Position numbers and translations under genes: made by a program. Shown piece after piece: positions 43,394 to 62,746 of a stretch of DNA of 64,000 bases. The stretch lies in the sequence record OQ718158.1, one strand, 5' to 3'. Numbering within the stretch: position 1 is the first letter of the stretch; the number at the start of each line of letters is the position of its first letter. Under the pieces are notes generated by a model, which was not told the origin of the DNA, searched no databases, and saw nothing but the letters and a program-made list of their open reading frames with translations.

Positions 43394-44234
43394 ATCAAAA
43401 TTTTATTTTGTTTTTCCAATAGTTCCCCTACCGCGTGGGGATAGTTTCCCCGCAGTATCTGGAGTTAGATTTTTCTGAATCTGGAATCATTATCTTATAA
43501 ACTGGGGGCAATGTCAACGACCTGGACGGATATTTTTAAAAATTTTTTCAGTACTGAATTTTGGGCGTAACTATGCACCCGGTGGGCTTGAGTCTTTCTC
43601 GACTTGATGGAACTATTATACAGTACTGAAAAAATAAAGCAATACCCTGGAAGCAAAAAAGTTTTAATTAATTTGCTTGCTATCCTGGGCCGGACTATGG
43701 TACTATATTTCAGTACTGAGAAAGTGCGTTTACCTGCTAGGGTGCGGGAGTGTATCCTTTTTTTATATCTTGAATTTTGGGCGTAATTCCGCACCCTCTG
43801 GGGTTTCCGCTTTCTCGCGTCTATGTAGTAATTATACGCTTTTTCAGGATCAAGTCAATACCTAAAAACAAAATAATTGAAAATAATTTAACGCGTTTAA
43901 ACGGCCCGTAAAGCCCTGGAATGATTGGAATGGTGCAAATGTATAGCTTAGGTGTATTAATGCGTTAGAATGCGTCTGAGGCCGTTTTACGGGGTATAGG
44001 GATGATTTGGTGGATTGATTCAGTACTGAATGATAGTACTACTATATAGAAAGATAGTTCCCCTGGATGGTTGCAGTACTGAATGATAGTACTGAATAAT
44101 AGTTCCCCTATATAGAAAGAAAACTATTTTAAAAGTATTTGTAGAAAGTACTTGCAAACTAAGTTTAACGGCGTATAATGTTTTACATCGAGAGCGGGAA
44201 CACTTCCCGCTACATATTACGAGAGATTAAAACG

Positions 44235-44597
44235 ATGGCGACTCAAATCACTAAAATTATTGCTAACCTGGTTAACTTTCGCGACGAGATGAAAGATCTT
44301 CCGGCAGAAACGGTAAAAATTCACATTTCAGCTTATCGGGAACTTATTGCAATGTTACCGCTTAAGCGTGAACAATACGCCGCGACCGTGATGCTTGATG
44401 CGATGATCCATAAGATGATCGCCAGTGATTTAACGATGGTTTATCAGTATATGGGCGAAAATTTCGCGGTGTATAGTAAACCAGTACCAGGAATGGAAAG
44501 TACAGAAGTATTACACGGTTTAAATTTAAAACAAGATGCATGGGATAATATGCCTCGTTTCCTGGTATGGGCTGACAGTGGCAAGATTTACGAATAA
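44235..44597 (+). CDS. early hypothetical protein
   Basis: true start MATQ 44235; upstream MFYIE extension is promoter DNA. Confidence 0.75.
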   Translation: MATQITKIIANLVNFRDEMKDLPAETVKIHISAYRELIAMLPLKREQYAATVMLDAMIHKMIASDLTMVYQYMGENFAVYSKPVPGMESTEVLHGLNLKQDAWDNMPRFLVWADSGKIYE

Positions 44598-44691
44598 GTT
44601 TTAAAAAGTACTTGCAAACTAAGTTTAAAAGCGTATAATGTTTTACATCAGGTGGGGAATAGTTCCCCACTATAATTAAGAGATTAATTTC

Positions 44692-44925
44692 ATGAGTACT
44701 ATTTTAACTGTTTCTCAATCCGTTGCACTGACTGACCTATTAAACGCTTTAAGCCGTTGCACTGAGGTTGGCTTGTTTGATGTGGTAGACGTTGCACCGG
44801 ACGTTATTAATCATTTTTGTGATGCGATGGAAGAATGTAAGGAAGATGATAGCCGTATGATGGCGGTCGCCTTTGAGGAAGTACAACCAGGTGAGATCAA
44901 AGGTTTACCAGTACTGAAAAAATAG
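44692..44925 (+). CDS. early hypothetical protein
   Basis: own promoter cassette and SD. Confidence 0.7.
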   Translation: MSTILTVSQSVALTDLLNALSRCTEVGLFDVVDVAPDVINHFCDAMEECKEDDSRMMAVAFEEVQPGEIKGLPVLKK

Positions 44926-45007
44926 TACTTGCAAACTAAGTTTAAAAGCGTATAATACTTTCTATCAGGTGGGGAATAGTTCCCCACTATATAAGAGGAT
45001 TTAAAAA

Positions 45008-45247
45008 ATGGCTAAATCAAAAATGTTCTTAGGTCACAAAAACAAAACTCATTGGAATGTAAGCCTTTGGATTAATAACGATGAGTCATTGTACCGGTTG
45101 GCCCAGGACTTTATTAACGATAGCACTAATCGCAATGATGCGGCCCGTCATATGATGTTATTTTTAGAACAGACTGGACAAGATAAAACACCGGACGGAT
45201 TCAAATATAGCACTACTGCGATCCGTGCGGCGATGGTTGGAATGTAA
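45008..45247 (+). CDS. early conserved phage protein (paralog of 47111)
   Basis: GHKNKTHWNVSLWINNDESLYRLA...TPDGFKYS. Confidence 0.8.
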   Translation: MAKSKMFLGHKNKTHWNVSLWINNDESLYRLAQDFINDSTNRNDAARHMMLFLEQTGQDKTPDGFKYSTTAIRAAMVGM

Positions 45248-45335
45248 TAGAATAGAATTTATTTAAAGTACTATTGCACGGGGATAGTACTTTATAATAG
45301 TGTTTTATTCATACACCAACGATAAGGGCAACAGC

Positions 45336-45602
45336 ATGAATATTAAGTATTTTGCGACGCGTGAACAAGCTCGGATCGCCGCACGGCAGGACGGGGCAAC
45401 GTTTAAAGATATGGGCGTACAATCGGAACGTGGTAAACGTTGGGCCATTGTAAAGCGTAGTACCGCCAGATCATTACAGTACTGGTTAGCGGCCTTAAAA
45501 AGTCCCGATAGTGTATCGCGTCGAGTGGTAGAAATAAAGCTCGACCGAAAGGGCAACCGCGTGACTGTGTACCGTACTAAAAAGATTGCAGTACTTGAAT
45601 AA
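45336..45602 (+). CDS. early hypothetical protein (paralog of 57850)
   Basis: ATRE.AR..AR..GA.FKDMG...DRKGNRVTVY. Confidence 0.75.
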   Translation: MNIKYFATREQARIAARQDGATFKDMGVQSERGKRWAIVKRSTARSLQYWLAALKSPDSVSRRVVEIKLDRKGNRVTVYRTKKIAVLE

Positions 45603-45689
45603 AAAGTACTTGCAAACTATGTTTAATGGCGTATAATGTTTTACATCGAGAGCGGGAACACTTCCCGCCTATAACCTGGAGTAATAAAA

Positions 45690-45920
45690 ATGACTAATAT
45701 GTATATGACTGAAGTTAAAACCGTAAAAGATACTACCACGAATAAAACTACTTACTTACAGCGGATCTGCGGTGTATGGCAACGTATCAGCAAATCAAAG
45801 TACTTTAAATTAACATCATATGCAAACCGTTCGGATTCATTCAGTACTGAAATAAAAGGTAATAAAGTACACCAATACGGCACTTATTATTATTATAGCC
45901 TGGACGCGATTGCAGTCTAA
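45690..45920 (+). CDS. early hypothetical protein
   Basis: promoter cassette, GGAG SD. Confidence 0.7.
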   Translation: MTNMYMTEVKTVKDTTTNKTTYLQRICGVWQRISKSKYFKLTSYANRSDSFSTEIKGNKVHQYGTYYYYSLDAIAV

Positions 45921-46202
45921 GCAGTTTACAAATCTTTACAATTGCCGGTATTGACTTATTTTGTCAGTACTGGCATAATGTATTCATTGGCAGATAAGCC
46001 GTAGCCCATAGGGTGCGGGAGTGTATCTATAGAAAAATTAGTTTAGTACAGTTACAATTGTGCACCCGGTGGGTTAGCTGTTGTCATGGGGTATATTATG
46101 CCAGTACTTGATAATGCTGTCAATACTTTTTTAATATTCAGTACTGAAAACTATTTTTAAAAAGTACTTGCAAACTATGTTTAAAGGCGTATAATGTTTT
46201 AC

Positions 46203-46277
46203 ATCAGGACGGGGAACGAAATAAGTAACTTCCCGTTAAGTAGCCCAGGAGTAAGGCACACGAAAAACTCCCCTGAT
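46203..46277 (+). ncRNA. candidate structured small RNA with H-type pseudoknot (copy A)
   Basis: starts at +1 of promoter 46168-46195; ATCAGG/CCTGAT closing stem; GCC/GGC and GGAG/CTCC pseudoknot; no ORF. Confidence 0.75.
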
Positions 46278-46345
46278 AAAATAGTTTGACAATTGTTTTT
46301 AAAAGCGTATAATACTTACATCAACTACTGAATGAGGGTTACAAA

Positions 46346-47020
46346 ATGAAAACTATCACTACTACTACTTTCGTTATGGATTTTTCTGAATTGAATGAGG
46401 GTTGCAAAGCGAAAACTGTCACTAATACTACTTTCGTTATGGATTTTTCTGAATTGAACGCAGAACAAAAAACGTCAGCTATCGAACTGGTTCGGGAACG
46501 TGAAAAAAACTTAAACGATGATTATTTTTCTGAAAGTGAAATTGAATACTATAAAGAAACAGTACTACCGGAATATGGCATTAATGACGCTGAAATACAA
46601 TTCAGTGGTTTTTGGTCCCAGGGTGACGGTGCATCAATCAGTACTGACCACGTTGACGCAGTGAAGTTTTTACGCAAGGTAAGAGCATTAACTAAATATC
46701 GCTCAATCCGTCACTTGCTGAATGAAGATGATTTGGCGATGAGTGTAAAGCGTTCTCACTCCCACTACTCGCATGAGAATACTGTAAGCGGGTACATTGA
46801 ATCGGCTTACACTGATTTAACCGCAAAACAAGAAACGTTAGTTAATGAGCTTGAGGAACTACTCACTGAAACTATTCGTGAATTATCCCGCAAGTTGTAC
46901 CGTGATTTAGAGAATGCATATGAGGATCAATTCACTACTGAAAACATTACGGCACTGATTGAGGGTAACGAATATCAATTCAATGTTATTAATGGCGTAG
47001 TAGAATCAATCGAATATTAA
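46346..47020 (+). CDS. acidic early protein (FSGFWSQGDGA family) with 21-aa N-terminal duplication
   Basis: own promoter; IQFSGFWSQGDGAS motif. Confidence 0.8.
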   Translation: MKTITTTTFVMDFSELNEGCKAKTVTNTTFVMDFSELNAEQKTSAIELVREREKNLNDDYFSESEIEYYKETVLPEYGINDAEIQFSGFWSQGDGASISTDHVDAVKFLRKVRALTKYRSIRHLLNEDDLAMSVKRSHSHYSHENTVSGYIESAYTDLTAKQETLVNELEELLTETIRELSRKLYRDLENAYEDQFTTENITALIEGNEYQFNVINGVVESIEY

Positions 47021-47110
47021 TTTAAAAAGTACTTGCAAACTAAGTTTAAAGGCGTATAATACTTTATATCGAGGCGGGGAGTGGTTCCCCGCTCAAACGA
47101 GGATTAAAAA

Positions 47111-47350
47111 ATGGCTAGTACTAAAACTTACAACGGGCACAAAAACAAAACTCATTGGAATGTTTCCTTATGGATTAATAACGGTGAGTCATTGTATCGG
47201 CTTGCTCAAAGTTGCATCGCACAAAGTAGAACTAAAGATATTGCTGCGGAATGTATGTACCGCAGATTAAAAGCCAACGGTACTACTACAACGCCGGACG
47301 GATTCAAGTATAGCACTACGGCGATCCGTGCTGCAATGGTTGGAATGTAA
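47111..47350 (+). CDS. early conserved phage protein (paralog of 45008)
   Basis: NGHKNKTHWNVSLWINNGESLYRLA...TPDGFKYSTTAIRAAMVGM. Confidence 0.8.
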   Translation: MASTKTYNGHKNKTHWNVSLWINNGESLYRLAQSCIAQSRTKDIAAECMYRRLKANGTTTTPDGFKYSTTAIRAAMVGM

Positions 47351-47408
47351 TATTCAGTACTGTAACAATGGCGGGGAATGGTTCCCGCCTTTATTGAGGG
47401 TTTATCTA

Positions 47409-47669
47409 ATGAGTAAAGTAATTAGCTATACAGTACTAAGCAAGTCATTATCTATTAGCCAGTGCACCGATGGTTATTGGCTATTTGATGAAACGCGTGG
47501 AATGAATTTAGCTATGCGTGCAAAAACTGCTGAGGCGGCGTATCTTGAGGCACTGGAATACTACCAGGAACGTTTAACGGAAGTAGAAGAAGATTATAAA
47601 AGCCTCAAAGCGAAAGTAGATCATTTCGTCGGTCAATTCATCGAGGAAGACGACGACAAACAATATTGA
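47409..47669 (+). CDS. early hypothetical protein, coiled-coil C-terminus
   Basis: true start MSKV 47409, GAGG SD. Confidence 0.72.
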   Translation: MSKVISYTVLSKSLSISQCTDGYWLFDETRGMNLAMRAKTAEAAYLEALEYYQERLTEVEEDYKSLKAKVDHFVGQFIEEDDDKQY

Positions 47670-47755
47670 AAAAGTACTTGCAATTAGTTTTAAGTACTGT
47701 ATAATGGTTTACATCAAAGGGAGAAATGGTTCTCCCTGGTAATGAGGAAAATAAA

Positions 47756-47977
47756 ATGGCTAATATCACTACTCTTTCCCAACTGGAAGCACTGGTTAAA
47801 TCTATGCGGGAACATGCCGACAAAATCGGCGTACAAGATCCAGCCGTTTGCTTCTGCGACGAATTGAATGATGATACCCTGGTAATAGCAGAAGTCCAGG
47901 ACGTTTCTAACTATTCCTCGCGTTACACTGGCGGCGTAGCAAATAAAGGTGACTTCTGTTTATACCTTACAAAATAA
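47756..47977 (+). CDS. early hypothetical protein
   Basis: true start MANI 47756, GAGGA SD. Confidence 0.72.
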   Translation: MANITTLSQLEALVKSMREHADKIGVQDPAVCFCDELNDDTLVIAEVQDVSNYSSRYTGGVANKGDFCLYLTK

Positions 47978-48220
47978 CAACGCGGGGAGATAATAACTCC
48001 CCGTTACTTTTTCAGTACTGAATCATTTAATAGACGGATCTCGGCACCCGGTGGGTTAGTGACTGTTTCGTCTTGATGTAGTAATTATGCCAGTACTGGA
48101 TGCACTTGTCAACAATTATTTTTCAAATACTTTTTATTAAAATACTTGCAATTAGTTTTTAAACGCGTATAATGTTTTGCATAGGGGGAGCGGTTCCCCT
48201 GGTAACTAAGGAATAAGAAA

Positions 48221-48457
48221 ATGGTCGAACAAATCAAATCAACGTCTTCGAATGTAACGGGAACGGTAGCACACTTTACTAGTGATGAATCGCGGGGCGT
48301 TCCCTATTGTGCTGTACATGTAAACACTGAGGGTAACTACTGGTTTACGGTTTACGGATCATATTCATTTGGACGGCCAGGGCATCAAAAAATTCTGGAT
48401 AAAGTACAACCAACGGGTAAAAATATCACTGCCGAAATGTTTTATAAAAAATCATAA
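48221..48457 (+). CDS. early hypothetical protein
   Basis: promoter cassette, AAGGA SD. Confidence 0.72.
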   Translation: MVEQIKSTSSNVTGTVAHFTSDESRGVPYCAVHVNTEGNYWFTVYGSYSFGRPGHQKILDKVQPTGKNITAEMFYKKS

Positions 48458-48541
48458 AGTACTTGCAATTAGTTTTTAGTACTGTATAATATTTTACATC
48501 GCAAGGGGGAGCGGTTCCCCCTGGTAACTAAGGATAATCAA

Positions 48542-48841
48542 ATGAAAATTGCAATCATCGCCCTGGCTTTATCTGTTTCCTCTTTCGCTGTTAATGCGTC
48601 ATTAGATGTAAGTAGTGAAAAATTCATTCAGTGCACTGTTGCAATGACCGATGAAAGAACTGGCGAGATTGTATTAAAGGATTTAGAGATCCAGCCGGAA
48701 GCATTTAAAAACGGGCCGTTCCATGAAGAAGACGAAAAAGGTAGCACGACAATTTATTACGATGCCAGTACTAAACGCGGTTCGGTCACTGTAATGGATA
48801 CTGAGAAAGTAACTCATACTGGCGTTATTAATTGCCGTTGA
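48542..48841 (+). CDS. early exported protein
   Basis: signal peptide ending VNA; Cys at both ends of mature domain. Confidence 0.75.
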   Translation: MKIAIIALALSVSSFAVNASLDVSSEKFIQCTVAMTDERTGEIVLKDLEIQPEAFKNGPFHEEDEKGSTTIYYDASTKRGSVTVMDTEKVTHTGVINCR

Positions 48842-48862
48842 TAGATACTACGGGGTAACATC

Positions 48863-49093
48863 ATGACTAAGCGAATTGTTTTACTTAACGAAAGCAGTAC
48901 TACACAACTACTTAACGCCGTGCATTATGATATTGAAACGAGCGTTAATCTTATCAGTACTGTCGTACTGTTGGACACTGGAAAGGTCGCCAATGATAAA
49001 GCGATTGCAGGTATATTAACGGATCTTGAGCCTGGTAGCAGTGCACCCATAACGTTAAATGGTAAAGTGTTTAATATTTTACTCACTGATTAA
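48863..49093 (+). CDS. early hypothetical protein
   Basis: GGGGT SD, followed by terminator. Confidence 0.65.
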   Translation: MTKRIVLLNESSTTQLLNAVHYDIETSVNLISTVVLLDTGKVANDKAIAGILTDLEPGSSAPITLNGKVFNILLTD

Positions 49094-49099
49094 GTACAT

Positions 49100-49122
49100 A
49101 GCCCACCTGGTGGGCTTTTTTT
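49100..49122 (+). terminator. intrinsic terminator
   Basis: AGCCCAC-CTG-GTGGGCT-TTTTTT. Confidence 0.85.
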
Positions 49123-49211
49123 GTTTTTGTAGTATCGTAGTACTGAGATACTTTGAAAATAGTTTTAAAAAAGTAGTTGACATTACCGCAGAAAAGCGTA
49201 GAATGTATTAC

Positions 49212-49284
49212 ATCAAGACGGGGAGCACTAAGTAGACCGCCAGTAAGTCGAACGAAAAACTGGACACGTCGAGAAAACTTTGAT
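49212..49284 (+). ncRNA. candidate structured RNA with H-type pseudoknot (copy C), leader of H-NS-like gene
   Basis: GAC/GTC and CCAG/CTGG stems, compensatory relative to copies A and B; promoter TTGACA-16-TAGAAT at 49178. Confidence 0.7.
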
Positions 49285-49327
49285 ACACTAATAAACGTAA
49301 ACTAAACTTTAATTGAGGATTTATAAA

Positions 49328-49810
49328 ATGGCTAATGTAAAATCATTCATCAAAGCACTGGTAGCAAATGAAACTAACGTCGCGGCTGAGATCCTGGCTG
49401 AACTGGATAACGATACCATGAAAGCGGTACGCAATAATTTTAACATCGCGTACAGTACTGCGAAAGAACTACAAGCAAATAAAGCGGCAGAAATTGAAGC
49501 GGCAAAGGCTGCCCGTGAAGCAGAACTACAAGCAACAATCGAAAGTATTCAGGCGGCAGTAGTTGGATTGGATCTGGAAGTAGTTACAGAGATGGCACAA
49601 AAAGCCCTGGCGGTTAAGTATGGGGAAGACAAGCCAGAAGTAAAAGCCAAAAAATGGATTCAGGAACGCGTAGCGGTAGTACTGGATAATGGGGAAGAAT
49701 ATCTGATTCCGGTGCGTGGTAACTGTATTGCGGTAGTACTGGACGCGATTAACGCCAGCGGTATGACTCGCGAGGAATGGATCGAATCTCATCGCAAAGT
49801 TGAAGCATAA
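49328..49810 (+). CDS. H-NS/StpA-like protein
   Basis: coiled-coil N-terminal half; C-terminal VLDNGEEYLIPVRGNCIAVVLDAINASGMTREEWI aligns by eye with H-NS [35 protein letters not shown]. Confidence 0.55.
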   Translation: MANVKSFIKALVANETNVAAEILAELDNDTMKAVRNNFNIAYSTAKELQANKAAEIEAAKAAREAELQATIESIQAAVVGLDLEVVTEMAQKALAVKYGEDKPEVKAKKWIQERVAVVLDNGEEYLIPVRGNCIAVVLDAINASGMTREEWIESHRKVEA

Positions 49811-49831
49811 CAATTAAAGTACTGAATCACT

Positions 49832-49857
49832 AGCCCACTGTATAAGTGGGCTTTTTT
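49832..49857 (+). terminator. intrinsic terminator
   Basis: AGCCCACT-GTATA-AGTGGGCT-TTTTT. Confidence 0.85.
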
Positions 49858-50094
49858 GTGTTTATCGTTTACCAGGCCACCAGCACCGCCTAGAAACGAT
49901 TCTAACGTATTAAACTGTTTATCTGATGCATTGCCCTAGCTGGTGGCGTGAAGGTCGTTAGAATGCGATTGAGAGCGTTTAAAGTATTTTGCAAAAAGTA
50001 ATAAAAAGTACTTGCACGATTAAGAGATTAGCGTATAATGTTTTACATCGAGAGGGGGAAACGGTTCTCCTTCCAAATCAAAGGAATCAAAACA

Positions 50095-50322
50095 ATGGCT
50101 ATCGTAATCACTCGCGTAACTGGTACTACTGGCAATTCTTCTACTGTTGCTGTAATTACTAATAAGAAAGGTGCGGAATTGCATTTTGCAATGGATAAAT
50201 GGGCCGTTAATGAGTTCGGTCAGTGGGCAAGTGTAGCATACATTGAAACCTATCAAGTGCCGTCGATTAGTTTAACTGATTTGGGCGTTGAGCGTATCCT
50301 TTGCCTTGATGAATTAAATTAA
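50095..50322 (+). CDS. early hypothetical protein
   Basis: true start MAIV 50095. Confidence 0.7.
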   Translation: MAIVITRVTGTTGNSSTVAVITNKKGAELHFAMDKWAVNEFGQWASVAYIETYQVPSISLTDLGVERILCLDELN

Positions 50323-50407
50323 AAAAGTACTTGCAAAGTAAATCGAATAAAGTATAATACATTACATCAAGGGGAGAAATGGTTCTCCCCACTACAAGGA
50401 AACTAAA

Positions 50408-50551
50408 ATGAAAACTTGTCAATGTGGTCAGAAATCTATTACGGGTTTAAAGCGGGGCGTTGCTCTTTGCCAGTACCATTATAATTTACAAGTATGGGGT
50501 AAAGAATGGGCCGACCAGGTGGAAGCAGCAAAGAAAGCAAAAAGTAAGTAA
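50408..50551 (+). CDS. small Zn-finger-like protein (47 aa)
   Basis: MKTCQCG...LCQYH; AAGGA SD; translated by hand. Confidence 0.65.
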   Translation: MKTCQCGQKSITGLKRGVALCQYHYNLQVWGKEWADQVEAAKKAKSK

Positions 50552-50631
50552 AATATTATCACAGTACTATTGACATAGTTTGATAGTACTGGCATAATAG
50601 ATTTTATCAAGACAACTAAGAGGAAACAATA

Positions 50632-50844
50632 ATGGCTATCATCACAAAAATCAAAGTTAACAAATCACTGGTTAAACTTGAACAAGTGAAAGCAGGTTAT
50701 AAAGTATCGTGGTGCGGTATGTATCGGATGTTCACCGATATAGACAATGCAATCAAGTACTACACTGACACCGTTGCCTCATTCGTTCGTGCTGATGTGG
50801 TTATGGCAGTGGCAACGCACAAAGCAGCGAAAGAAAGTAAGTAA
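50632..50844 (+). CDS. early hypothetical protein (paralog of 53770)
   Basis: MAIITK...Y.VS...Y..F..ID.A..YY. Confidence 0.72.
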   Translation: MAIITKIKVNKSLVKLEQVKAGYKVSWCGMYRMFTDIDNAIKYYTDTVASFVRADVVMAVATHKAAKESK

Positions 50845-51930: not shown

Positions 51931-51935
51931 TTAAT

Positions 51936-52825: not shown

Positions 52826-53036
52826 AAAAAGTGGTTGACTCCGGTCAGCCATTTTGCTATTATATATTCATTGAGAGATAGCTCACTAGCCCACAGGGTG
52901 CATAAGTGTATCTATTATATGAGTATTGAGTACTGAAAACTATTTTTAAAAAGTACTTGCAAACTATCTCAATAAGCGTATAATGTTTTACATCGAGAGG
53001 GGGAAACGGTTTCCCCTGGTAATAAGGAAACAAATC

Positions 53037-54495: not shown

Positions 54496-54823
54496 TTGTT
54501 GACATACAATGCCAGTACTGGCATAATACTTACATCAAGACGAGAACGTCACTAACCCATAGGGTGCACAAATGTAACTATATAATATCGATCAATAAAT
54601 GATCAAAAAAGTACTGGATCAATTTAGCATAAGGAGTATAATTCTGATCAATTCTTGATCAAAGGCAATATACGCAGTTGAATTTATATAGACAGTACAA
54701 AGGCGTTACTATCCGTGGTAATGCTGATGGATATGTAGTATCATACGGTTTGAATAAGATAAGCACTAGTAGTATTATTGTAGCATTACAGTACTATAGT
54801 ATTTTTATAATGAGGTTAAAATA

Positions 54824-55144: not shown

Positions 55145-55501
55145 ATGGGAATACAACATATCACGCGTACTACTGACAATGGCGAGATCACTGGCTATCA
55201 AGTACAGGGCAAAGTAGCACAATTGCAGTACTGGTTTGTTAAACGTGGAATCATTGCACCGGATCTTGATTATGACCGTGTAGCGTTTATTGATTCTCTT
55301 TATGTTGATCCTGATAGTCGGGGGAATGGTGAAGGTAACGAATTAATGAATGCCTTTATTGATGCCGCCGATGATTCAGATTGTATCATCTTAGAATGCG
55401 ATACGGGAGAAGATAACGCCTTTAATCTTAAAGAATGGTATGAAGGTTTCGGATTCGAGGTACTGATCGATAGTGAATATCCTATCATGATTTTATCATA
55501 G
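55145..55501 (+). CDS. GNAT family acetyltransferase
   Basis: IDSLYVDPDSRGNGEG..LM (motif A); L..WYEGFGF. Confidence 0.88.
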   Translation: MGIQHITRTTDNGEITGYQVQGKVAQLQYWFVKRGIIAPDLDYDRVAFIDSLYVDPDSRGNGEGNELMNAFIDAADDSDCIILECDTGEDNAFNLKEWYEGFGFEVLIDSEYPIMILS

Positions 55502-55580
55502 TACTTGCATTTAGTTTTCAGTACTGTATAATAGTTTACATGAAGGGGAGAATAGTTCTCCCCACTACAAGGAAAGACAA

Positions 55581-55769
55581 ATGGAAAACTTATCAAGTAT
55601 TTTAGTACAAGATGATTTCGGTAATCCTGGAAGTGCTATCATTGTTCGGGGTAATAAAGCAACGTTTGTTATTGCTGGTGGACCCGTACAGCGTAGCATT
55701 AAAAATAATGCTGTTACCATTAATAATGTACGCTATCGCTTAGATAAAGAATTAATTCATAAACTGTAA
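55581..55769 (+). CDS. early hypothetical protein
   Basis: promoter cassette, AAGGA SD. Confidence 0.7.
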   Translation: MENLSSILVQDDFGNPGSAIIVRGNKATFVIAGGPVQRSIKNNAVTINNVRYRLDKELIHKL

Positions 55770-55855
55770 AAAAGTACTGGACAATAGATTATAGTACTGT
55801 ATAATAAGTTACATGAAGGGGAGAAAATGATTCTCCCCACTAAGAGGAAAGAAAA

Positions 55856-56068
55856 ATGCAAGGTCAACTAATCGTTCGTAAATGGTCTGATACTAACGCT
55901 AAACCGTGGGATGTACAATACATCGCCCCCAATGGTGAATCCAGATATCAACCAGGTGTAACGCATAGTACTGAGCAATTCGCCGCCGCTCATCGTGAAC
56001 GTCTGTTACAATCAATGCAGCAAGGTTTCGGTGAAAAATTCATTCAGGATCATTGGCTGAAAGATTAA
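55856..56068 (+). CDS. early hypothetical protein
   Basis: promoter cassette, GAGGA SD. Confidence 0.7.
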   Translation: MQGQLIVRKWSDTNAKPWDVQYIAPNGESRYQPGVTHSTEQFAAAHRERLLQSMQQGFGEKFIQDHWLKD

Positions 56069-56154
56069 AAAGTTCTTGCACAGTACTGAATAAAGTGTAT
56101 AATGTTTTATATCGAGAGGGGAATAGTTCCCCTCCTAACAAAAAGGAAAGTATA

Positions 56155-56328
56155 ATGATCCAAGTAGAATTATCAGTACTGAAAGATCTATTTTATCGGT
56201 TAGGTACTAATGGCGAGTATCCTAAAAGTGATACCGCAAAACTTTTTGTATCACTCGACTTATGGCAACGCGAACAATTAGTAATGTCGTGGCGTAAAGG
56301 TAAAGCAGATCGCGAGGTGAAAGCATGA
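56155..56328 (+). CDS. early hypothetical protein
   Basis: true start MIQV 56155. Confidence 0.68.
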   Translation: MIQVELSVLKDLFYRLGTNGEYPKSDTAKLFVSLDLWQREQLVMSWRKGKADREVKA

Positions 56329-56474
56329 AAGAATTCTTATTTGAAGTAGTGTTTCAAGGTGTCGGTAGTAACCAACTGATTCGCTCAAGTGGTTACAATG
56401 TTAACCAGGCATGGAATAACATTAAACAAATGTACCCGAACGCTATCACATATCGCAACCCGAAAGAAGTTTAA
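56325..56474 (+). CDS. small early protein (49 aa)
   Basis: GAGGT SD, ATGA coupling; translated by hand. Confidence 0.6.
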   Translation: MKEFLFEVVFQGVGSNQLIRSSGYNVNQAWNNIKQMYPNAITYRNPKEV

Positions 56475-56656
56475 AAATAATTGAAAAAGGGATTGACTCC
56501 GGTCAGTCCCTTTGCTATTATATACGCATAGAAACAAATTAGCCCACCGGGTGCATAAATGTATCTATTGTTTGCTGGTGGCTAGTACTATCAAGTACTG
56601 AAAACTATTTTTAAAAAGTACTTGCAAAGTATCACGATAAGCGTATAATGTTTTAC

Positions 56657-56729
56657 ATCAGGACGGGGAACGAAACAAGTAACCCCGTTAAGTAGTCCAG
56701 GAGTAAGACATACGAAAAACTCCCCTGAT
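56657..56729 (+). ncRNA. candidate structured small RNA with H-type pseudoknot (copy B)
   Basis: GTC/GAC and GGAG/CTCC stems; ATCAGG/CCTGAT closing stem; own promoter; no ORF. Confidence 0.75.
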
Positions 56730-56798
56730 AAAATAGTTTGACAATAGAAAGTAAACGAGTATAATACTTACATCAACCACTGATAAGGAAACATTAAA

Positions 56799-57074
56799 AT
56801 GCGGATTCTACTGACAGCTAACGAAATCGAACAAGTACTGACTACTAACCTGGAAGACTGGAAACGTGAAGCAGATATCCAGGCGGTTCAATGGCTTAAT
56901 GATAAGTTAACGCCGGATGATTTAAGTAAGATTGTAGATCCTCAATTCTACGAAGATATTCACGACACCGCGTTAAGCGTCGAGGATGTACTTGATAAGC
57001 ACTACATTGATACTGATTTACATGTTTACGGTCGTAAAAACTTTATCACTATTCACGACATTTACAATACTTAA
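56799..57074 (+). CDS. acidic early protein
   Basis: own promoter, AAGGA SD, D/E-rich. Confidence 0.72.
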   Translation: MRILLTANEIEQVLTTNLEDWKREADIQAVQWLNDKLTPDDLSKIVDPQFYEDIHDTALSVEDVLDKHYIDTDLHVYGRKNFITIHDIYNT

Positions 57075-57160
57075 GTATTGACAAAGTATCTTAGTACTGT
57101 ATAATAGTTTACATCGAGAGGGGAAACGGTTCCCCTCCTAACAAAGAGAGAGAAATAAAA

Positions 57161-57343
57161 ATGGCTAAGTGCACTATCTGCAAGAAAGAAATAGTATTAG
57201 TTCCAAGTGCCCGTGAACGTGCCGCTCGGTTTGGTGGCAAAGCGTCAGACTATACAAAAATGTTTACTGCCCATACAGCTTGCCAGGTAGCAAAACGTTC
57301 ACAAGAAAGCGTAGAATTAATGCGTAAACTTTCCAAAAAATAA
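57161..57343 (+). CDS. small Zn-finger-like early protein
   Basis: CTIC...H..C. Confidence 0.72.
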   Translation: MAKCTICKKEIVLVPSARERAARFGGKASDYTKMFTAHTACQVAKRSQESVELMRKLSKK

Positions 57344-57430
57344 GTATTGACAAAGTATCTTAGTACTGTATAATAGTTTACATCAAGCGAGGGGAATGGT
57401 TCCCCTCCTAACAAAGAGAGAGAAATAAAA

Positions 57431-57754
57431 ATGGCTATGATCCTTACCCAGAAAGTAGAACTGAAAATTGTAACCTCCTTTGACATTAACGTTAATCGGT
57501 GGACTGATTCACACGGCAATACTTACCACTCTTGCTACGTGTCTGCGTTAATTGGCGACCGCTGGGAAGACCTGGGACACGAAACCTTTACATACGGTTA
57601 CGGTACACAAGGCGAATACACGGGCTTGGAGATCATTAAAGAAACCGTTATAGGTTTCAACCCGAAAGAAAAAGTTATTCACCGCATCGAGGAAGAGATC
57701 AACAAAGAAATAACAGTTCGATACAACGATGTAAAACGTAAGAAAGACATGTAA
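57431..57754 (+). CDS. early conserved phage protein (paralog of 50934)
   Basis: RWTDSHGNTYHSC...FTYGYG...DVKRKKD. Confidence 0.8.
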   Translation: MAMILTQKVELKIVTSFDINVNRWTDSHGNTYHSCYVSALIGDRWEDLGHETFTYGYGTQGEYTGLEIIKETVIGFNPKEKVIHRIEEEINKEITVRYNDVKRKKDM

Positions 57755-57849
57755 TAGAATCCATTTAAAGTACTATTTGACATTGCCCAGATAGTACTTT
57801 ATAATAGACTCTAACTTGTAGTACTAACTCAACTAATAGGATGTATACC

Positions 57850-58245
57850 ATGATTACTAAATTCTACGCTACCCGTGAAGCTGCCCGTATTGTTGCACGC
57901 GAGGAAGGAGCAGCATTTAAAGACATGGGCAAAGATGCACCGAAAGGTCAACGCTGGGCCGTACAGTTCAAAGAAATCTCTGATATTGTGAATTCACCTG
58001 AGCCAGTACTGACAGCAGCAGAACTAAAACGAGCGGATATGCTGGCGGCAATACTTGACGCACAAGATGAGTTTATCGCTGATTCTGATATCAAAGTACA
58101 GGTAAACCACACCGCATGGACTCACGCGGATCACCTGGCAAACCTTAAGCGTCCAAGTGAACTGATTCGCAACCAGAAAGAGATCCGACACGACCGTAAG
58201 GGTAATCGTGTAACAGTATACAGTAAACGCCGCCAGGTTATCTAA
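57850..58245 (+). CDS. early hypothetical protein (paralog of 45336)
   Basis: FYATREAAR..GAAFKDMG...DRKGNRVTVY. Confidence 0.78.
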   Translation: MITKFYATREAARIVAREEGAAFKDMGKDAPKGQRWAVQFKEISDIVNSPEPVLTAAELKRADMLAAILDAQDEFIADSDIKVQVNHTAWTHADHLANLKRPSELIRNQKEIRHDRKGNRVTVYSKRRQVI

Positions 58246-58267
58246 TAACTTGCAGTACTAACAACAC

Positions 58268-58292
58268 GGCGGGATCAGTTCCCGCCTTTTTT
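58268..58292 (+). terminator. intrinsic terminator
   Basis: GGCGGGA-TCAGT-TCCCGCC-TTTTTT. Confidence 0.8.
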
Positions 58293-58306
58293 ATAGGACA
58301 AACAAC

Positions 58307-58561
58307 ATGATTAAGGTTCAACTATCAAACGATAATGTATTACGGGTACACTATAAAGCACCTCAGAGAATCATCACAAAGGCCGTACAGCTTGCTAATG
58401 AGTTTATTAATGGTAACCTATTACCTAGGAAGTTAAGCAACGGGAAACTGCGTGTAATCGACGTGGACACTAACAACAGGATAGTAATCGAGAACACAGG
58501 AAAGATAAACCTTTATGAGCATCAACAATACAATAAGAAAATAAAACTAATATCACGTTGA
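58307..58561 (+). CDS. hypothetical protein, possible RelE/ParE-like fold
   Basis: RKL..LRVIDV..NRIV..LYEHQQYN pattern. Confidence 0.45.
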   Translation: MIKVQLSNDNVLRVHYKAPQRIITKAVQLANEFINGNLLPRKLSNGKLRVIDVDTNNRIVIENTGKINLYEHQQYNKKIKLISR

Positions 58562-58614
58562 CAGTACTCAATTGTTTTAGTACTATGTACACATACCAAC
58601 ACGGGAGAAACAAA

Positions 58615-58833
58615 ATGAAATTATCTAAAATCGAAAAGAAAACTATTGATGAAGCAGTTAAGCACGGTTATACCTTTCGTAATGATTCACATTTTACCAA
58701 TTTTCAACAAGGGTATCGTACTATTAAAAAACTAATTGACAAAGGTTTATTAGTTGAAGTCAATAACGGTAACGGTATCGAGTATCAACCAACACAGGAC
58801 GCATTTTATTTTAAGAAATATAATATTATCTAA
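58615..58833 (+). CDS. early protein, possible winged helix
   Basis: true start MKLS; R.IKKLIDKGLL. Confidence 0.65.
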   Translation: MKLSKIEKKTIDEAVKHGYTFRNDSHFTNFQQGYRTIKKLIDKGLLVEVNNGNGIEYQPTQDAFYFKKYNII

Positions 58834-58890
58834 TTGACAGTACTCAAATGTTTTAGTACTATATGTACATACCAACACGGGGGAAACAAA

Positions 58891-59133
58891 ATGATTACTT
58901 TAGAAAAACGTATCAAAGAAACTACATCGCTGGTGGAACTGTTAACAGTACTCAAATGTAAAACAACACCATTCAGCACGCCGGACTTTATTAATATGGT
59001 TGATGTTAATGGTCGCTATCGTATCACGGTCGAACAAGGAGCGGCGAAAGTATTCAGTACTAAAAACACTAAGGAAGTGATCCACGCCGTTAATGTTAAA
59101 AAAGTAGTTGCCATTGATAGTAAAGTACTGTAA
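58891..59133 (+). CDS. early hypothetical protein
   Basis: true start MITL; promoter block duplicated from 58559. Confidence 0.68.
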   Translation: MITLEKRIKETTSLVELLTVLKCKTTPFSTPDFINMVDVNGRYRITVEQGAAKVFSTKNTKEVIHAVNVKKVVAIDSKVL

Positions 59134-59164
59134 TATAGTTTCATTAACTCAAGGAGAACATGCA

Positions 59165-59749
59165 ATGCGTAATTATACTAAATTCATCCGTACACTGTCA
59201 GAAATGGAAACCAACAAAGAGATCCTTTCAGCTTGTCGGTTAGCTGGACTGGAGATCATCGGTGCTGGTTCTTCCCGTATAGTATTCGCTTTAAATGATC
59301 GGTTAGTGATTAAGGTCGCGAATTGTGATGCGGGTGTAGAACAAAATGAAACTGAATGTAAGGTATGGAATTTTTTAGACTATGACCGCCCTCAGTTGAA
59401 ACAGTACTTTGCAAAGGTGCATATGCATTTATGCGATCCTGATAATATGTTTATCGTTATGGATCGGTTGAGTACTGCAAGTAAAGGCAGTGTGAAGCAC
59501 GTTAACGCGTGCAATGAATTAAAGTACAATATTAAACGTAATGCAATTGAACGCCAGCACCGCTTTGCTGATGCACTACAACACGTCGATGATACATTAT
59601 CAACACTAACGATAAGAGATATCAGAAAACAGAATATCGGCCAGGATCGTAATGGCCTTATTAAAGTACTTGATTACGGTTTAACCTGCAATATCTGGAA
59701 TCAGTACTATAAAAAGCGTGATGTGGCAGCAAGTAAGGTAACACGATAA
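59165..59749 (+). CDS. early protein-kinase-like protein
   Basis: GAGSSRIVF, LVIKVA, QNETE, RDIRKQNIG, VLDYG; ATG 59165 after AGGAG. Confidence 0.75.
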   Translation: MRNYTKFIRTLSEMETNKEILSACRLAGLEIIGAGSSRIVFALNDRLVIKVANCDAGVEQNETECKVWNFLDYDRPQLKQYFAKVHMHLCDPDNMFIVMDRLSTASKGSVKHVNACNELKYNIKRNAIERQHRFADALQHVDDTLSTLTIRDIRKQNIGQDRNGLIKVLDYGLTCNIWNQYYKKRDVAASKVTR

Positions 59750-59973
59750 AAAAGATTAAAAAAGGGATTGACTCCGGTCAGTCCCTTTGCTATTATATAT
59801 TCATTGAGAGATAACTCACTGACCCATAGGGTGCGGAAGTGTATCTATTATATAAGTATTCAGTACTGAAAACTATTTTAAAAAAAAGTACTTGCATTGT
59901 ACTTAGAATCAAGTATAATGTTTTATATCGAGAGGGGGAAATGGTTCTCCCTGGTATATTAAGGAATAAAATC

Positions 59974-60195
59974 ATGACTACAATGACTTGCATTTACGCT
60001 TCCAATCTTCTGAATGATGCGGCCTTTAATGTTGATTCAGAATATCAATGTTATCGGGATGAAAATAAAAAAGTTTTTGTAGTTGATAATAATGGTTTCC
60101 ATATTGAATTACAATCCGGCTTCACTGGCGTTGATGGTAAATCAGTATGGGGCGTACAGGATGATAAAGGTACATATCATTTTAAACGTAATTAA
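59974..60195 (+). CDS. early hypothetical protein
   Basis: true start MTTM 59974. Confidence 0.7.
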   Translation: MTTMTCIYASNLLNDAAFNVDSEYQCYRDENKKVFVVDNNGFHIELQSGFTGVDGKSVWGVQDDKGTYHFKRN

Positions 60196-60278
60196 GTATT
60201 GACAAAGTATCTTAGTACTGTATAATAGTTTACATCAAGGGGAGAATAGTTCTCCCCGATACTAAAAGGAATAAAATC

Positions 60279-60686
60279 ATGACTACTACTAATCAAGCTC
60301 GGTCCATCGCCAACGATAAAAATCATGCTGAAATGGTCGCTGGTTACATTGAAGCTATGCAATTCAGTACTGTACACAATGAGAACGGCGAATACCTGGA
60401 AGATTATGAATTATCAGAGCAAGCCCATCAAGCGGCAGTGATTGCATGTTCACGTTTCCTTGCTGTACATGGTGAAGATATGGAAACAGTACAAAAACAC
60501 CATAATCCTGATTATACTTATAGTCATGCGGGTCATGATCTCTTTCTTACTCGCGAAGGTCACGGCACTGGTTTTTGGGATCGTGATATCGGTCACTATG
60601 ATGATATATTCACTAAGTACTGCGAAGAAATCAACGTTTGCGATCCCTATGTAGGCGATGATAATCTAATCTATATGGGCGAATAA
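60279..60686 (+). CDS. early conserved phage protein (GHD.xLTR.GHG.GFWDR family)
   Basis: AGHDLFLTREGHGTGFWDR motif; acidic. Confidence 0.8.
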   Translation: MTTTNQARSIANDKNHAEMVAGYIEAMQFSTVHNENGEYLEDYELSEQAHQAAVIACSRFLAVHGEDMETVQKHHNPDYTYSHAGHDLFLTREGHGTGFWDRDIGHYDDIFTKYCEEINVCDPYVGDDNLIYMGE

Positions 60687-60773
60687 AAGTATTTGACAAA
60701 GTATATCAGTACTGTATAATAGTTTACATCAAGGGGAGAATAGTTCTCCCCACCAATAAAAGGAAACAAAATT

Positions 60774-61046
60774 ATGTCCAGCTACTCCGCTACTATGATC
60801 ATTAAAGATATGAACGGTAATCCTACTTCTGCTGGTGGATCATTTGGAAACATTAATTTAGATGGTCGGTTATCCATGCAATCAGCCATCGATGCAGCGA
60901 AAGAAGTTTTTAAGAATGAATGTACTGTAAGTAAGCTGGATTATATGGGATTCGCTATCGAAAAAACTAATCGTTTTGTGAACTACAAAAATCCACTGAT
61001 GATCGATACTAACCTGAAAGCAAACGAAGTGGGGTACTTATTATGA
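60774..61046 (+). CDS. early hypothetical protein
   Basis: LDGRLS..AI..A motif; AAGGA SD. Confidence 0.72.
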   Translation: MSSYSATMIIKDMNGNPTSAGGSFGNINLDGRLSMQSAIDAAKEVFKNECTVSKLDYMGFAIEKTNRFVNYKNPLMIDTNLKANEVGYLL

Positions 61047-61234
61047 CAGTAGAAGAAGTTAAAAAAGTACTGGCAGTACTACGCTATCATAATCATTGCA
61101 AGGTGAAGAATGATCCTGATTATCTCGATTCATCCCTGGAAGAGGATACACTACAAGCAATAAGCCATATGCAAAAAATGCTTAAGCGTATGACCGAAAA
61201 GAATAGGCCGGACTATATCGGAAATAAAATTTAA
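61043..61234 (+). CDS. early hypothetical protein
   Basis: ATGA coupling. Confidence 0.65.
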   Translation: MTVEEVKKVLAVLRYHNHCKVKNDPDYLDSSLEEDTLQAISHMQKMLKRMTEKNRPDYIGNKI

Positions 61235-61321
61235 AAAGTACTTGCATTGTAGTTAGATTAACGTATAATGTTTTATATCGAGAGGGGGAAATGGTTTCCC
61301 CTCAAGTCCAGGAGATACACC

Positions 61322-61585
61322 ATGAACACTATCGAAATCACTATCAATGCACACGTATACGACAACGTAGTACTGCAAACTACTATGACCGCTAATGATA
61401 CCAGTACTTTGCGGAATACTGTTATTAGTGCCGTATGTGCTGCAATCGGTGATGTCGCCCTGGAAAATGCAGAACACATCAACAACGGTTTCACTATGTG
61501 CAAACGTGATAACGCAAAACATATCATCGTAGAAGGTTACGGCGGTGTAGAATTTAATGTTTATATGAAAAAAGTACTTGCATAA
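61322..61585 (+). CDS. early hypothetical protein
   Basis: true start MNTI, AGGAG SD. Confidence 0.7.
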   Translation: MNTIEITINAHVYDNVVLQTTMTANDTSTLRNTVISAVCAAIGDVALENAEHINNGFTMCKRDNAKHIIVEGYGGVEFNVYMKKVLA

Positions 61586-61652
61586 TAACTAAAACAAAGT
61601 ATAATGTTTTGCATAGGGGGAGATATCCTCCCCCACTAAAAGGAGTAATAAA

Positions 61653-61877
61653 ATGGCTAACTTTGATGAACTGATGCGGGAAGTAGCTAACCTGGCAGAA
61701 GAGAAGAAATCATTCGATTCTATCTATAACACCGCTCACCGTGATTCAGTACTGGCATGTAACCAGGATCAAAAAGATGAACTAATCGCCACCTATCATG
61801 AAGCATGGAAGTACTACCGACAATGGGAGAAAGAAGAAAGTGAGTCTACCATCGAAGGTATCAATAATCTAATCTAA
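61653..61877 (+). CDS. early hypothetical protein
   Basis: AAGGAG SD, helical and acidic. Confidence 0.72.
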   Translation: MANFDELMREVANLAEEKKSFDSIYNTAHRDSVLACNQDQKDELIATYHEAWKYYRQWEKEESESTIEGINNLI

Positions 61878-61953
61878 AAGTTTTATTTCAGTACTATTGA
61901 CATAGCTTGATAGTACTGATGTAATAACTTTACTAACTACAAGGGGAAACATA

Positions 61954-62211
61954 ATGGATCAATTCACACAATATCGGGTAAATCCTCAATCTATGGCCTA
62001 CGTAGAAGACCATAAAACGTTACCAGTACTGCAACCAGTTAAAGGCCGTATCTATCGTGGCCTTGCCTGGGATACGGCCCAGGATGGATATAAAACCGTC
62101 GCCGTGGGGATGTATTGCGGGAATGGTGAATGGTTTGATCCTAACAATCCGATTGCACTTGACAGTACTGAAAAAATGAAATGGGCCGACTACATCGAAG
62201 ATATTTCATAA
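61954..62211 (+). CDS. early hypothetical protein
   Basis: promoter, GGGGA SD. Confidence 0.7.
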   Translation: MDQFTQYRVNPQSMAYVEDHKTLPVLQPVKGRIYRGLAWDTAQDGYKTVAVGMYCGNGEWFDPNNPIALDSTEKMKWADYIEDIS

Positions 62212-62301
62212 AAACTATTTGACAGTACTAACCAGTAATGTATAATGTTTTACATAGAGCGGGGGAATAGTTCTCCCGCCAATAGTTTGGAGTTAAACAT
62301 T

Positions 62302-62502
62302 ATGTCTATCGCTATCGCCCTGGTTGAAGTACTGAAAGAAGCTAAAGCCAACCTTATCGATGTACAGATTAAGGAATTGCAAAACGGCTTAATCGGCTGT
62401 ACTTGTACCGCTGGTGGAGCGGCAGACTATCGAGAACACGAATCACTCGAATCACTGGTTCGGTATCTTACCATGATCGTTGATGATTGGAGAATCATCT
62501 AA
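62302..62502 (+). CDS. early hypothetical protein
   Basis: true start MSIA, GGAG SD. Confidence 0.68.
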   Translation: MSIAIALVEVLKEAKANLIDVQIKELQNGLIGCTCTAGGAADYREHESLESLVRYLTMIVDDWRII

Positions 62503-62746
62503 CAAAAAAGAATAAAAAAGGGATTGACTCCGGTCAGTCCCTTTGCTATTATATACGCATAGACAAAAACTAGCCCACAGGGTGCATAAGTGTATCCAAA
62601 ATATATAGTTAATAACGGTGAGTAACTATCTGCTGGTGGAGTGAAAACTATTAATAAAAAAGTATTGACAAAGTATATCAGTACTGCAATAATGTATCTC
62701 GTAGGGCGGCAATGGTGCGACGGCCCACAAAGTTAGGAGCTTCAAA

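Follow-up and report, generated by a model that had tools for sequence, protein, structure and literature searches.

The direct terminal repeat (DTR) of Escherichia phage vB_Ec-M-J carries eleven copies of a short element in which a promoter is followed not by an open reading frame (ORF) but by a transcribed module with an invariant core that can fold in two ways. The stretch of DNA analysed here (the window) is the final 64,000 bases of sequence record OQ718158.1 (100% identity to vB_Ec-M-J), a 378,573-bp Asteriusvirus genome of the RaK2/121Q/PBECO4 group of jumbo phages. We favour the reading that the elements are a clade-specific family of early, multicopy structured RNAs in which the RNA itself is the functional product and binds a conserved partner, and we give this reading a probability of about 40%. 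The kind of element is familiar from the promoter-plus-stem-loop cassettes and the early leader or small RNAs of phages; the family itself is undescribed, and the literature on the motif, on Asteriusvirus promoters and on jumbo-phage DTR RNAs yielded no description of it. Its distinctive features are the invariant two-state core, the multicopy layout in two orientations and the restriction to the terminal repeat. RaK2-like jumbo phages are therapy candidates against E. coli, Klebsiella, Salmonella and Cronobacter, and the way in which they take over the cell is almost uncharted. Their 20-kb terminal repeats, annotated only as dozens of hypothetical proteins, hold this conserved non-coding module and probably at least one further ORF-less RNA family. 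Here we map the element to the base and describe it by a structural and a covariance model. If its partner were RNA polymerase or a defence protein, it would represent a new RNA-based takeover mechanism; otherwise the module is still of use as a marker of where early transcription units begin and for the annotation of these phages.

The record labels positions 1-21525 “Direct Terminal Repeats”, and the window matches record positions 334573-356573 plus 525-20525. Since the end of the window matches both the start and the end of the record, window 42476-64000 is the right DTR copy (window coordinate = DTR coordinate + 42475). A DTR of 20,993 bp has been confirmed by restriction digests in the close relative fEgEco12 (PMC13070987). 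The element family spans window positions 43575-62585 and thus lies entirely within the DTR. A first-pass annotation made from the letters of the window had described the family as eleven promoter-driven elements; it missed the terminal repeat, the spread through the clade, the double use of GGGU in pairing and the gene-oriented copies as starts of transcription units.

The core pattern CCCANNGGGTGC has ten exact matches in the window against 0.01 expected from shuffles, none of which reached ten. The eleventh copy, 43733+ (CCTGCTAGGGTGC), which the annotation had listed with a compensatory CCT-GCT-AGG, is genuine and diverged; it scores 11.8 bits (E 0.2-0.4) with a covariance model made from 60 copies, with which the other ten score 30-48 bits. 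Run over 114 kb of this phage, the model found no further match in the 92 kb outside the DTR (the 42.5-kb remainder of the window and 50 kb past the left DTR). A sigma70-type promoter stands before each of the eleven copies, with 9-11 of 12 consensus positions, spacers of 16-18 nt, A-rich upstream sequence and often an extended -10, and the orientation of the element relative to it is fixed in every copy; the succession of promoter and core, as first proposed, thus holds throughout. From the end of the -10 hexamer to the core there are 22-29 nt, and the start predicted at the A of CAT places the core at +15 to +23. TGCR-N4-TGTA lies 3' of the core in eight of the eleven copies, as had been counted (the exceptions are 43575, 43791 and 48044). 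The copies are found where genes are widely spaced, in intergenic gaps of 211-425 nt, or in the opening 1.76 kb of the DTR, which has no ORF; none has an annotated coding sequence, or a Shine-Dalgarno sequence (SD) with an ORF, directly 3' of it. That no SD or ORF follows had been noted correctly; the next feature is another promoter, as given there, a terminator or a convergent copy. Coordinates are collected in Table 1. Copy 8 is preserved over 81 nt with 100% identity in seven other Asteriusvirus phages, whose DTRs are about 95% identical overall.

Table 1. Copies of the element and related features of the right DTR, in window coordinates. Each copy is designated by the lowest coordinate of its core and its strand; all copies except copy 2 match CCCANNGGGTGC exactly. 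Promoters, starts and hairpins are predictions.
Feature	Extent	Strand	Orientation	Promoter and start	First hairpin	Core	Bits	Other
Right DTR, 21,525 bp	42476-64000	.						contains all 11 copies
Copy 1 (43575-)	43557..43642	-	antisense to genes, toward DTR end	-35 43642-43637, -10 43620-43615, start ~43608	AGUC-GAGAAA-GACU	43586-43575	36.5	GGGUG pairs with CGCCC; second leftward promoter next, 43517-43489
Copy 2 (43733+), diverged	43677..43765	+	convergent with copy 3	TTGCTA-18-TGgTACTAT (read by eye), start ~43712	GUACU-GAGAA-AGUGC	43733-43745, variant CCU-GCU-AGG-GUGC	11.8	helix AGGGUGCG/UGUAUCCU (43739-43758) plus seven U, intrinsic terminator (terminator scan); predicted RNA ~50 nt
Copy 3 (43791-)	43773..43858	-	antisense	-35 43858-43853, -10 43836-43831, start ~43824	CGC-GAGAAA-GCG	43802-43791	30.7	
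Copy 4 (46005+)	45951..46034	+	gene orientation; convergent with copy 5	-35 45951-45956, extended -10 45974-45979, start ~45986	GGC-AGAUAA-GCC	46005-46016	44.8	second helix ends at 46034
Copy 5 (46062-)	46044..46123	-	antisense	-35 46123-46118, -10 46100-46095, start ~46087	not clear	46073-46062	35.1	
Copy 6 (48044-)	47972..48112	-	antisense, free-standing	-35 48112-48107, -10 48089-48084, start ~48077	GAC-GAAACA-GUC	48055-48044	38.8	intrinsic terminator 48003-47983 plus U-run; predicted small RNA ~105 nt
Copy 7 (52890+)	52828..52919	+	gene orientation	-35 52835, -10 52858-52863, start ~52870	UGAG-AGAUAG-CUCA	52890-52901	46.2	12-bp hairpin plus T-run holds the promoter (52828-52855), composite terminator-promoter
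Copy 8 (54556+)	54499..54585	+	gene orientation	-35 54499-54504, extended -10 54522-54527, start ~54534	GAC-GAGAAC-GUC	54556-54567	41.1	CCAGTACTGG palindrome in spacer
Copy 9 (56543+)	56486..56572	+	gene orientation	-10 56516-56521, start ~56528		56543-56554	44.7	composite hairpin plus T-run promoter 56486-56513; Chi site at 56574
Copy 10 (59823+)	59761..59852	+	gene orientation	-10 59791-59796, start ~59803	UGAG-AGAUAA-CUCA	59823-59834	48.1	composite hairpin plus T-run promoter 59761-59788
Copy 11 (62574+)	62517..62603	+	gene orientation	-35 62524-62529, -10 62547-62552, start ~62559		62574-62585	45.0	hairpin-type promoter, sequence as in copies 9 and 10
Chi sites in DTR	43063, 43075, 49877, 49939, 54214, 55674, 56574, 58929, 60831, 62410, 62632							

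The transcribed module is about 45-50 nt long, has stems of 3-7 bp and consists of a variable hairpin with an A-rich loop, a linker of 4-5 nt and an invariant segment with two possible folds. The first hairpin, correctly listed in the first-pass annotation with its changing stem and purine-rich loop, is found in most copies and is missing from some (56543, 62574, 46062). In 60 copies from relatives the leader folds at -2.9 kcal/mol versus -0.9 kcal/mol in shuffles (Wilcoxon p 1e-9), with more than 20 different stems (including GGC/GCC, GAG/CUC, GAC/GUC, CGC/GCG, AGACA/UGUCU and CCAC/GUGG) and loops such as GAGAAA, GCGAAA, AGAUAA and AGAACAA. The core hairpin, R-CCC-loop-GGG-U, is paired in 98% of cells; its loop is 3 or 4 nt of free sequence, and the base 5' of CCC is a G or an A that faces the invariant U. 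Three copies carry the double change CCU...AGG (CBB L041:4085, Yen9-04 L023:4533 and window 43733). The second helix, GGGUGCR/UGUAYCY, whose inner part is the TGCR/TGTA pairing that had been suggested before, is paired in 87-88% versus at most 71% in slid controls and uses three G.U pairs. Its central pairs vary only in wobble-compatible ways, one being UA in 58 copies and UG in 20 (other 0) and another GU in 62 and GC in 14 (other 1), and a pairing-competent Y-R-Y-Y-Y 3' strand occurs in 61 of 77 distinct copies in 15 versions. The core hairpin and the second helix share GGGU and are mutually exclusive; their constrained energies lie a few kcal/mol apart in most window copies, and the minimum-energy fold contains the core hairpin in 32 of 60 copies and the second helix in 17 of 60. 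This dual pairing of GGGU would explain its invariance without any protein contact. A long-range helix between the 5' leader (AGAUA, AUAGA) and a 3' UAUCU(AU) was tempting in several minimum-energy folds, with the apparent compensation UUAGACA/UGUCUAA; it was rejected as unsupported when the cognate duplexes proved no better in energy than permuted ones, whether all copies were compared (p 0.27) or a non-redundant set of 47 (p 0.44).

The core recurs across the clade. An exact-pattern scan of whole IMG/VR contigs, with a 21-nt pattern, found it in RaK2, GAP32, CBB, Yen9-04, BF, 121Q and several metagenomic jumbo contigs, clustered within each genome, and Erwinia phage Hallingskeid has 11 matches against 0.69 expected. 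The covariance model and phage genome search proposed with the first-pass annotation yielded a family of about 115 copies: 83 in 17 RaK2-like loci, including variants without the exact core, and about 30 more in metagenomic fragments. About ten letters of the core are invariant over phages that share only ~25% genome identity. vB_Ec-M-J, fEgEco12 and Hallingskeid each have seven gene-oriented and four antisense copies; all eleven keep their order and orientation in fEgEco12 despite differing gene cassettes between them, and the order in Hallingskeid is similar. Rfam 15 gave no match in the window at gathering scores, and at E up to 10 only three weak, unrelated matches in the DTR, none on the element. 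EcoKI/EcoBI sites, the DnaA box, Tus/Ter, the CsrA site, CRISPR repeats and T7 primase sites, as well as a resemblance to parts of tmRNA or RNase P RNA, were considered by inspection and dropped because the variable NN or the spacing spoils the match.

The two orientations differ in their surroundings. Of 82 copies across phages, 52 point the same way as the genes around them, and the other 30 are antisense. A composite promoter, set in a hairpin with a T-run, is found at 38 of 52 gene-oriented versus 2 of 28 antisense copies (Fisher p 1e-8), and in the window four of the eleven copies have a 12-bp hairpin and T-run over the -35 (three by scan, the fourth by sequence identity). With their promoters usually embedded in this way, the gene-oriented copies would open fresh transcription units, and their transcripts would continue into a regular gene promoter. 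A regular gene promoter follows 56-115 nt 3' of seven window copies. The antisense copies lead to no gene, and many of those that are unpaired carry an intrinsic terminator ~25 nt past the motif, a pattern that spans several genera (RaK2, CBB, BF, metagenomic relatives). A promoter and a terminator of its own without an ORF, i.e., the layout of a free-standing small RNA gene, are found at 43733+ (terminator at about +50) and at 48044-, a description that we limit to the antisense subset. Other copies form convergent pairs, 57-75 bp from core to core, in at least six phages (121Q, Hallingskeid, CBB, GAP32 and metagenomic relatives); the promoters of ColE1 RNA I and RNA II are also laid out convergently. 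That the leftward copies might be promoters of a leftward operon was rejected, as the genes just left of the right DTR lie on the + strand.

Three features point to the transcript as the entity that functions, namely the fixed orientation, the patterns of pairing and the existence of free-standing copies with terminators, and this supports the view of the first-pass annotation that this is a promoter-coupled structured RNA, neither coding nor purely a DNA feature. A leader that acts only in cis is hard to reconcile with the antisense copies, so we favour an early multicopy RNA that binds a conserved partner. The family, its layout, its conservation, its patterns of pairing and its confinement to the DTR are established here from sequence; that the element is transcribed, acts in trans and has a partner, of whatever kind, is what we infer. 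In the Pseudomonas jumbo phage PA5oct, RNA-seq has revealed highly transcribed, early, ORF-less transcripts from the DTR (PMC7318152), and this precedent, together with the near-consensus sigma70 promoters and the DTR location, makes early and abundant expression of the element plausible. In the mechanism that we propose, host sigma70 RNA polymerase would make small RNAs from the terminal repeat very early, each copy supplying a strong promoter and a 5'-terminal module of ~50 nt that folds either as the R-CCC/GGG-U hairpin or as the GGGUGCR/UGUAYCY hairpin, with the same GGGU in both. Seven copies would open early transcription units, four of them directly on the hairpin and T-run that end the previous unit, while the four opposite-pointing copies and copy 2 would be mostly free-standing (a ~50-nt RNA from 43733, a ~105-nt RNA from 48044 and two convergent pairs). 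The module would bind, sequence-specifically, a partner conserved across the Enterobacterales or these phages and could serve as a high-dose decoy or cofactor present before any phage protein, each packaged genome bringing 22 promoters. All observations are compatible with a decoy or protein-binding RNA. More specifically, and more doubtfully, the two-state hairpin may be an RNA ligand for a core Enterobacterales machine (RNA polymerase, an RNase or a defence sensor), possibly also a put-like modifier of the polymerase in cis, and so effect an RNA-only takeover or anti-defence step from ~22 promoters in the first seconds, before any phage protein.

Known RNAs resemble such a product in part. 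Decoys of the CsrB/RsmY type likewise offer many high-dose copies of one short protein-binding hairpin motif. Such sponges and the repeat-mimicking phage RNA anti-CRISPRs array their motifs in one RNA or mimic a known repeat, whereas each copy of the element has its own promoter, a loop of free sequence and a core without the GGA of a CsrA site. The PA5oct transcripts ncRNA001 and ncRNA002 (PMC7318152) share with the element the absence of an ORF, a position inside a long early DTR and high transcription, which is plausible for the element, in a distantly related phage; they differ in being 236-451 nt long and single-copy and in not matching the element model. The model found no match in the 17 kb searched of the 39-kb PA5oct DTR, which included both of these RNA-seq-defined RNAs, the best hit scoring 10 bits.

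Several observations weigh against the reading that we favour. Each core helix has one strand that never changes, which leaves formal covariation and shuffle tests powerless, and shuffles indeed equal the observed covariation values. The whole predicted RNAs fold in an ordinary manner (z -1.4 and -0.95). Mimicry of the host finds no counterpart, a 53-nt query having no match in 5,426 E. coli genomes, and targets complementary to the conserved single-stranded parts are not enriched, with none seen in 114 kb of phage DNA. Promoters, starts and ends of the element transcripts are predictions, and the binding partner is putative. The gene-oriented copies lack a terminator, and a discrete small RNA would there require processing. 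Finally, the strict placement after a promoter is equally expected of an element that acts co-transcriptionally in cis.

This last possibility is the main rival, which we consider unlikely overall though well ahead of the other alternatives. The nascent two-hairpin RNA would bind host RNA polymerase just past the promoter, with or without a factor, and change how the enzyme pauses or terminates over the remainder of the unit, in the manner of HK022 put or lambda nut. Like putL and putR, the element is a nascent RNA with two stem-loops that always lies directly 3' of a strong early promoter, with a sequence conserved between copies. A -10-like TANNNT stands at +12 or +14 after the core in 35 of 60 copies, a frequency inseparable from the AT-rich background, and recalls the -10-like element inside or adjoining put and the sigma-dependent pause that aids the folding of putL. 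A core invariant across phages of different host genera would fit a target as conserved as RNA polymerase; the composite promoters would make each of those units restart with this leader on a terminator hairpin; and intrinsic terminators exist on the DTR gene strand. The antisense third of the copies speaks against this scheme, as these lead to no gene and often run into a terminator, where a terminator-resistant polymerase would be harmful or pointless. Moreover, put measures ~70 nt and combines a triplex with two long stems; it is present in two gene-oriented copies per genome and has proven antitermination, suppressing pausing and termination in cis through the beta' zinc-binding domain of RNA polymerase and needing no protein factor. 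The element has stems of 3-7 bp and eleven copies per repeat on both strands. The likeness to nut lies in the early leader RNA and, in most copies, in the first hairpin, whose short stem (3-5 bp) and purine-rich loop (GAGAAA, GCGAAA, AGAUAA) resemble those of boxB, but the invariant part is 3' of this hairpin rather than 5'. No boxA (CGCTCTT or GCTCTTTA) occurs near any copy, and no DTR protein resembles the arginine-rich N protein, none exceeding 5 Arg per 18-residue stretch and none having such a stretch at the N-terminus (a weak test). Nearly every DTR gene already has a promoter of its own, and past the DTR, where genes form long, tightly packed arrays with few promoters, those promoters lack the element. 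Among the functions suggested at first pass, the decoy fits, a put- or nut-like antiterminator is possible with the reservations just given, and a replication origin is the weakest.

Less probable by some distance is that the elements only punctuate transcription, their hairpins pausing, attenuating or insulating strong promoters without a specific partner, for instance by preventing occlusion of the next promoter or by stabilising the 5' end. The unequal distribution of composite terminator-promoters between the two orientations and the regular gene promoters downstream of seven window copies favour such a role, as does the conversion of the second helix into a true intrinsic terminator where a U-run adjoins it (43733+, with seven U, and GAP32 L070:8962). 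A U-tract follows this helix, however, in only ~5 of 83 copies, and a generic hairpin would leave both the roughly ten invariant letters and the conserved free-standing antisense copies unexplained.

A feature of the DNA itself, either a recombination cassette or a site for a DNA-binding protein beside promoters, is improbable. The model for such a cassette is the promoter-early stem-loop (PeSL) of T4-type phages (Arbiol 2010, PMC2839356; Comeau 2014, PMC4122927). Both PeSLs and elements are repeated units of ~100 bp with a strong sigma70-type early promoter and a G/C stem-loop, concentrated in a plastic region of small orphan genes, and the PeSL layout of a hairpin over the -35 followed by a T-run recurs in the element promoters at 52828, 56486, 59761 and 62517 and in most gene-oriented copies of relatives. 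The DTR is mosaic among relatives (38-73% coverage), and palindromes such as CCAGTACTGG lie in several element promoters. But a PeSL ends in the SD and start codon of an ORF, and its stem-loop, in or around the promoter, is a terminator, whereas the element has no SD or ORF downstream, is defined by an invariant transcribed motif and is antisense in one third of cases. PeSL cassettes are also crossover points, and none of the six breakpoints of colinearity with fEgEco12 falls at an element; they lie at ordinary gene cassettes or within genes, and all eleven copies are kept in place. The CCU..AGG compensation, the variable loop length and the wobble-only variation suit a folded single strand rather than a duplex, and the orientation to the promoter never varies. 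Least probable of all, if only slightly less so, is a transcription-primed replication origin with a persistent R-loop, as in T4 oriF/oriG or ColE1: the replication genes of these phages are T4-like (CBB paper), the segment transcribed is rich in G, copies occur on both strands, and the convergent pairs resemble the ColE1 layout, but the conserved arrangement is convergent rather than divergent, so that primed forks would collide, the three G.U pairs of the second helix are weak in DNA, no conserved AT-rich unwinding element or iterons were seen next to the copies (the AT-rich stretch after the second helix being typical of all intergenic DNA here), and eleven origins in 21 kb would be unprecedented.

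The closer analogues of PeSLs are the ordinary gene cassettes of the DTR (PMC2839356). The DTR contains 53 small genes on the + strand, nearly every one with its own promoter (typically AAAGTACTTGCAA-N16-TATAAT), a 5'-untranslated hairpin GGGGA...TCCCC and an SD. Whole-gene insertions and deletions relative to fEgEco12 are flanked by near-identical cassettes of the AAAGTACTTGCAA type in the intergenic regions of window 44140-63640 (e.g., g002, 44687/44924), which amounts to PeSL-like modular shuffling of these cassettes in a non-T4 jumbo phage. Promoter-like sites number 106 in the DTR against 69 expected, twelve of them perfect (12/12), and 107 just past it against 110 expected, i.e., chance level. 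The organisation changes sharply at the DTR edge (record 21526-71000, locus L097, versus window 42476-64000): within the DTR there is one promoter per gene and spacers are 80-90 nt, and beyond it lie long arrays of tightly packed or overlapping genes. The first 1.76 kb of the DTR (window 42476-44235) has no annotated ORF and holds three of the elements, together with tandem repeats of the GGCTAGATGG/GGCTAAACGG type at 43290-43390, many CAGTACTG sites and a consensus promoter at 42851-42878 whose predicted transcript begins ACAUAGGGUGA, a partial core without CCC.

Three DTR genes have recognisable domains that fit host-takeover functions: a zinc finger of the DksA/TraR type (E 2e-11), an acetyltransferase of the GNAT type (E 4e-9) and, as a weak match, a protein-kinase-like domain (E 0.0035); the genes lie at window 54824-55081, 55145-55501 and 59165-59749. 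Genes g003-g005 (44920-45924) and g046 (61043-61231) are 82-90% identical in nucleotide sequence to rV5-like and phi92-like phages (Phapecoctavirus, Justusliebigvirus and records labelled Campylobacter phage), a similarity that indicates exchange of early genes among unrelated coliphages. A sub-threshold Rfam match to Trp_leader at 49795-49859 (29.9 bits versus a gathering score of 41) overlaps a strong intrinsic terminator at 49832-49852 and is probably merely that terminator. No tRNA or tmRNA genes were found.

Two short sequences recur in the window. One is the palindrome AGTACT, with 288 occurrences in 64 kb (about one per 220 bp), inside and outside the DTR (e.g., at 43550, 44022, 46140 and 52929), often as TCAGTACTGA or CCAGTACTGG and overlapping the -35 box or the spacer of a promoter. 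All RaK2-like loci have it at the same density (e.g., L002, L007 and L097, with 192 in 30 kb of Hallingskeid), whereas it is rare in PA5oct (2 in 17 kb), and it could be an operator or binding site of a clade-specific protein. Chi (GCTGGTGG) occurs 15 times in the window against 0.67 expected; eleven sites are in the DTR (Table 1), nine of them on the + strand, the orientation that meets a RecBCD complex coming in from the right end of the genome. Two Chi sites of opposed orientation are found 590 bp from the left boundary of the DTR, the next 50 kb contain only two, and in relatives Chi is also found within spacers of element promoters. These observations suggest protection of the genome ends against RecBCD.

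In Hallingskeid (L002 934-17505), a LexA-box-like motif, TACTGT-N8-ACAG, occurs ten times in 30 kb against 0.09 expected, usually ~20 nt past an element. The window lacks this motif and has TCAGTACTGAAAA in its place. A second ORF-less, promoter-driven repeat of ~80 nt is present in the DTR at 46201-46284 and 56656-56739 and, in diverged form, at ~49212-49300. Each copy lies between two promoters, and the copies share the blocks AUCARGACGGGGA, UAAGUAG, AGUAAG and ACGAAAAACU. The repeat has no match in Rfam and is conserved in fEgEco12, and it is probably another small RNA family.

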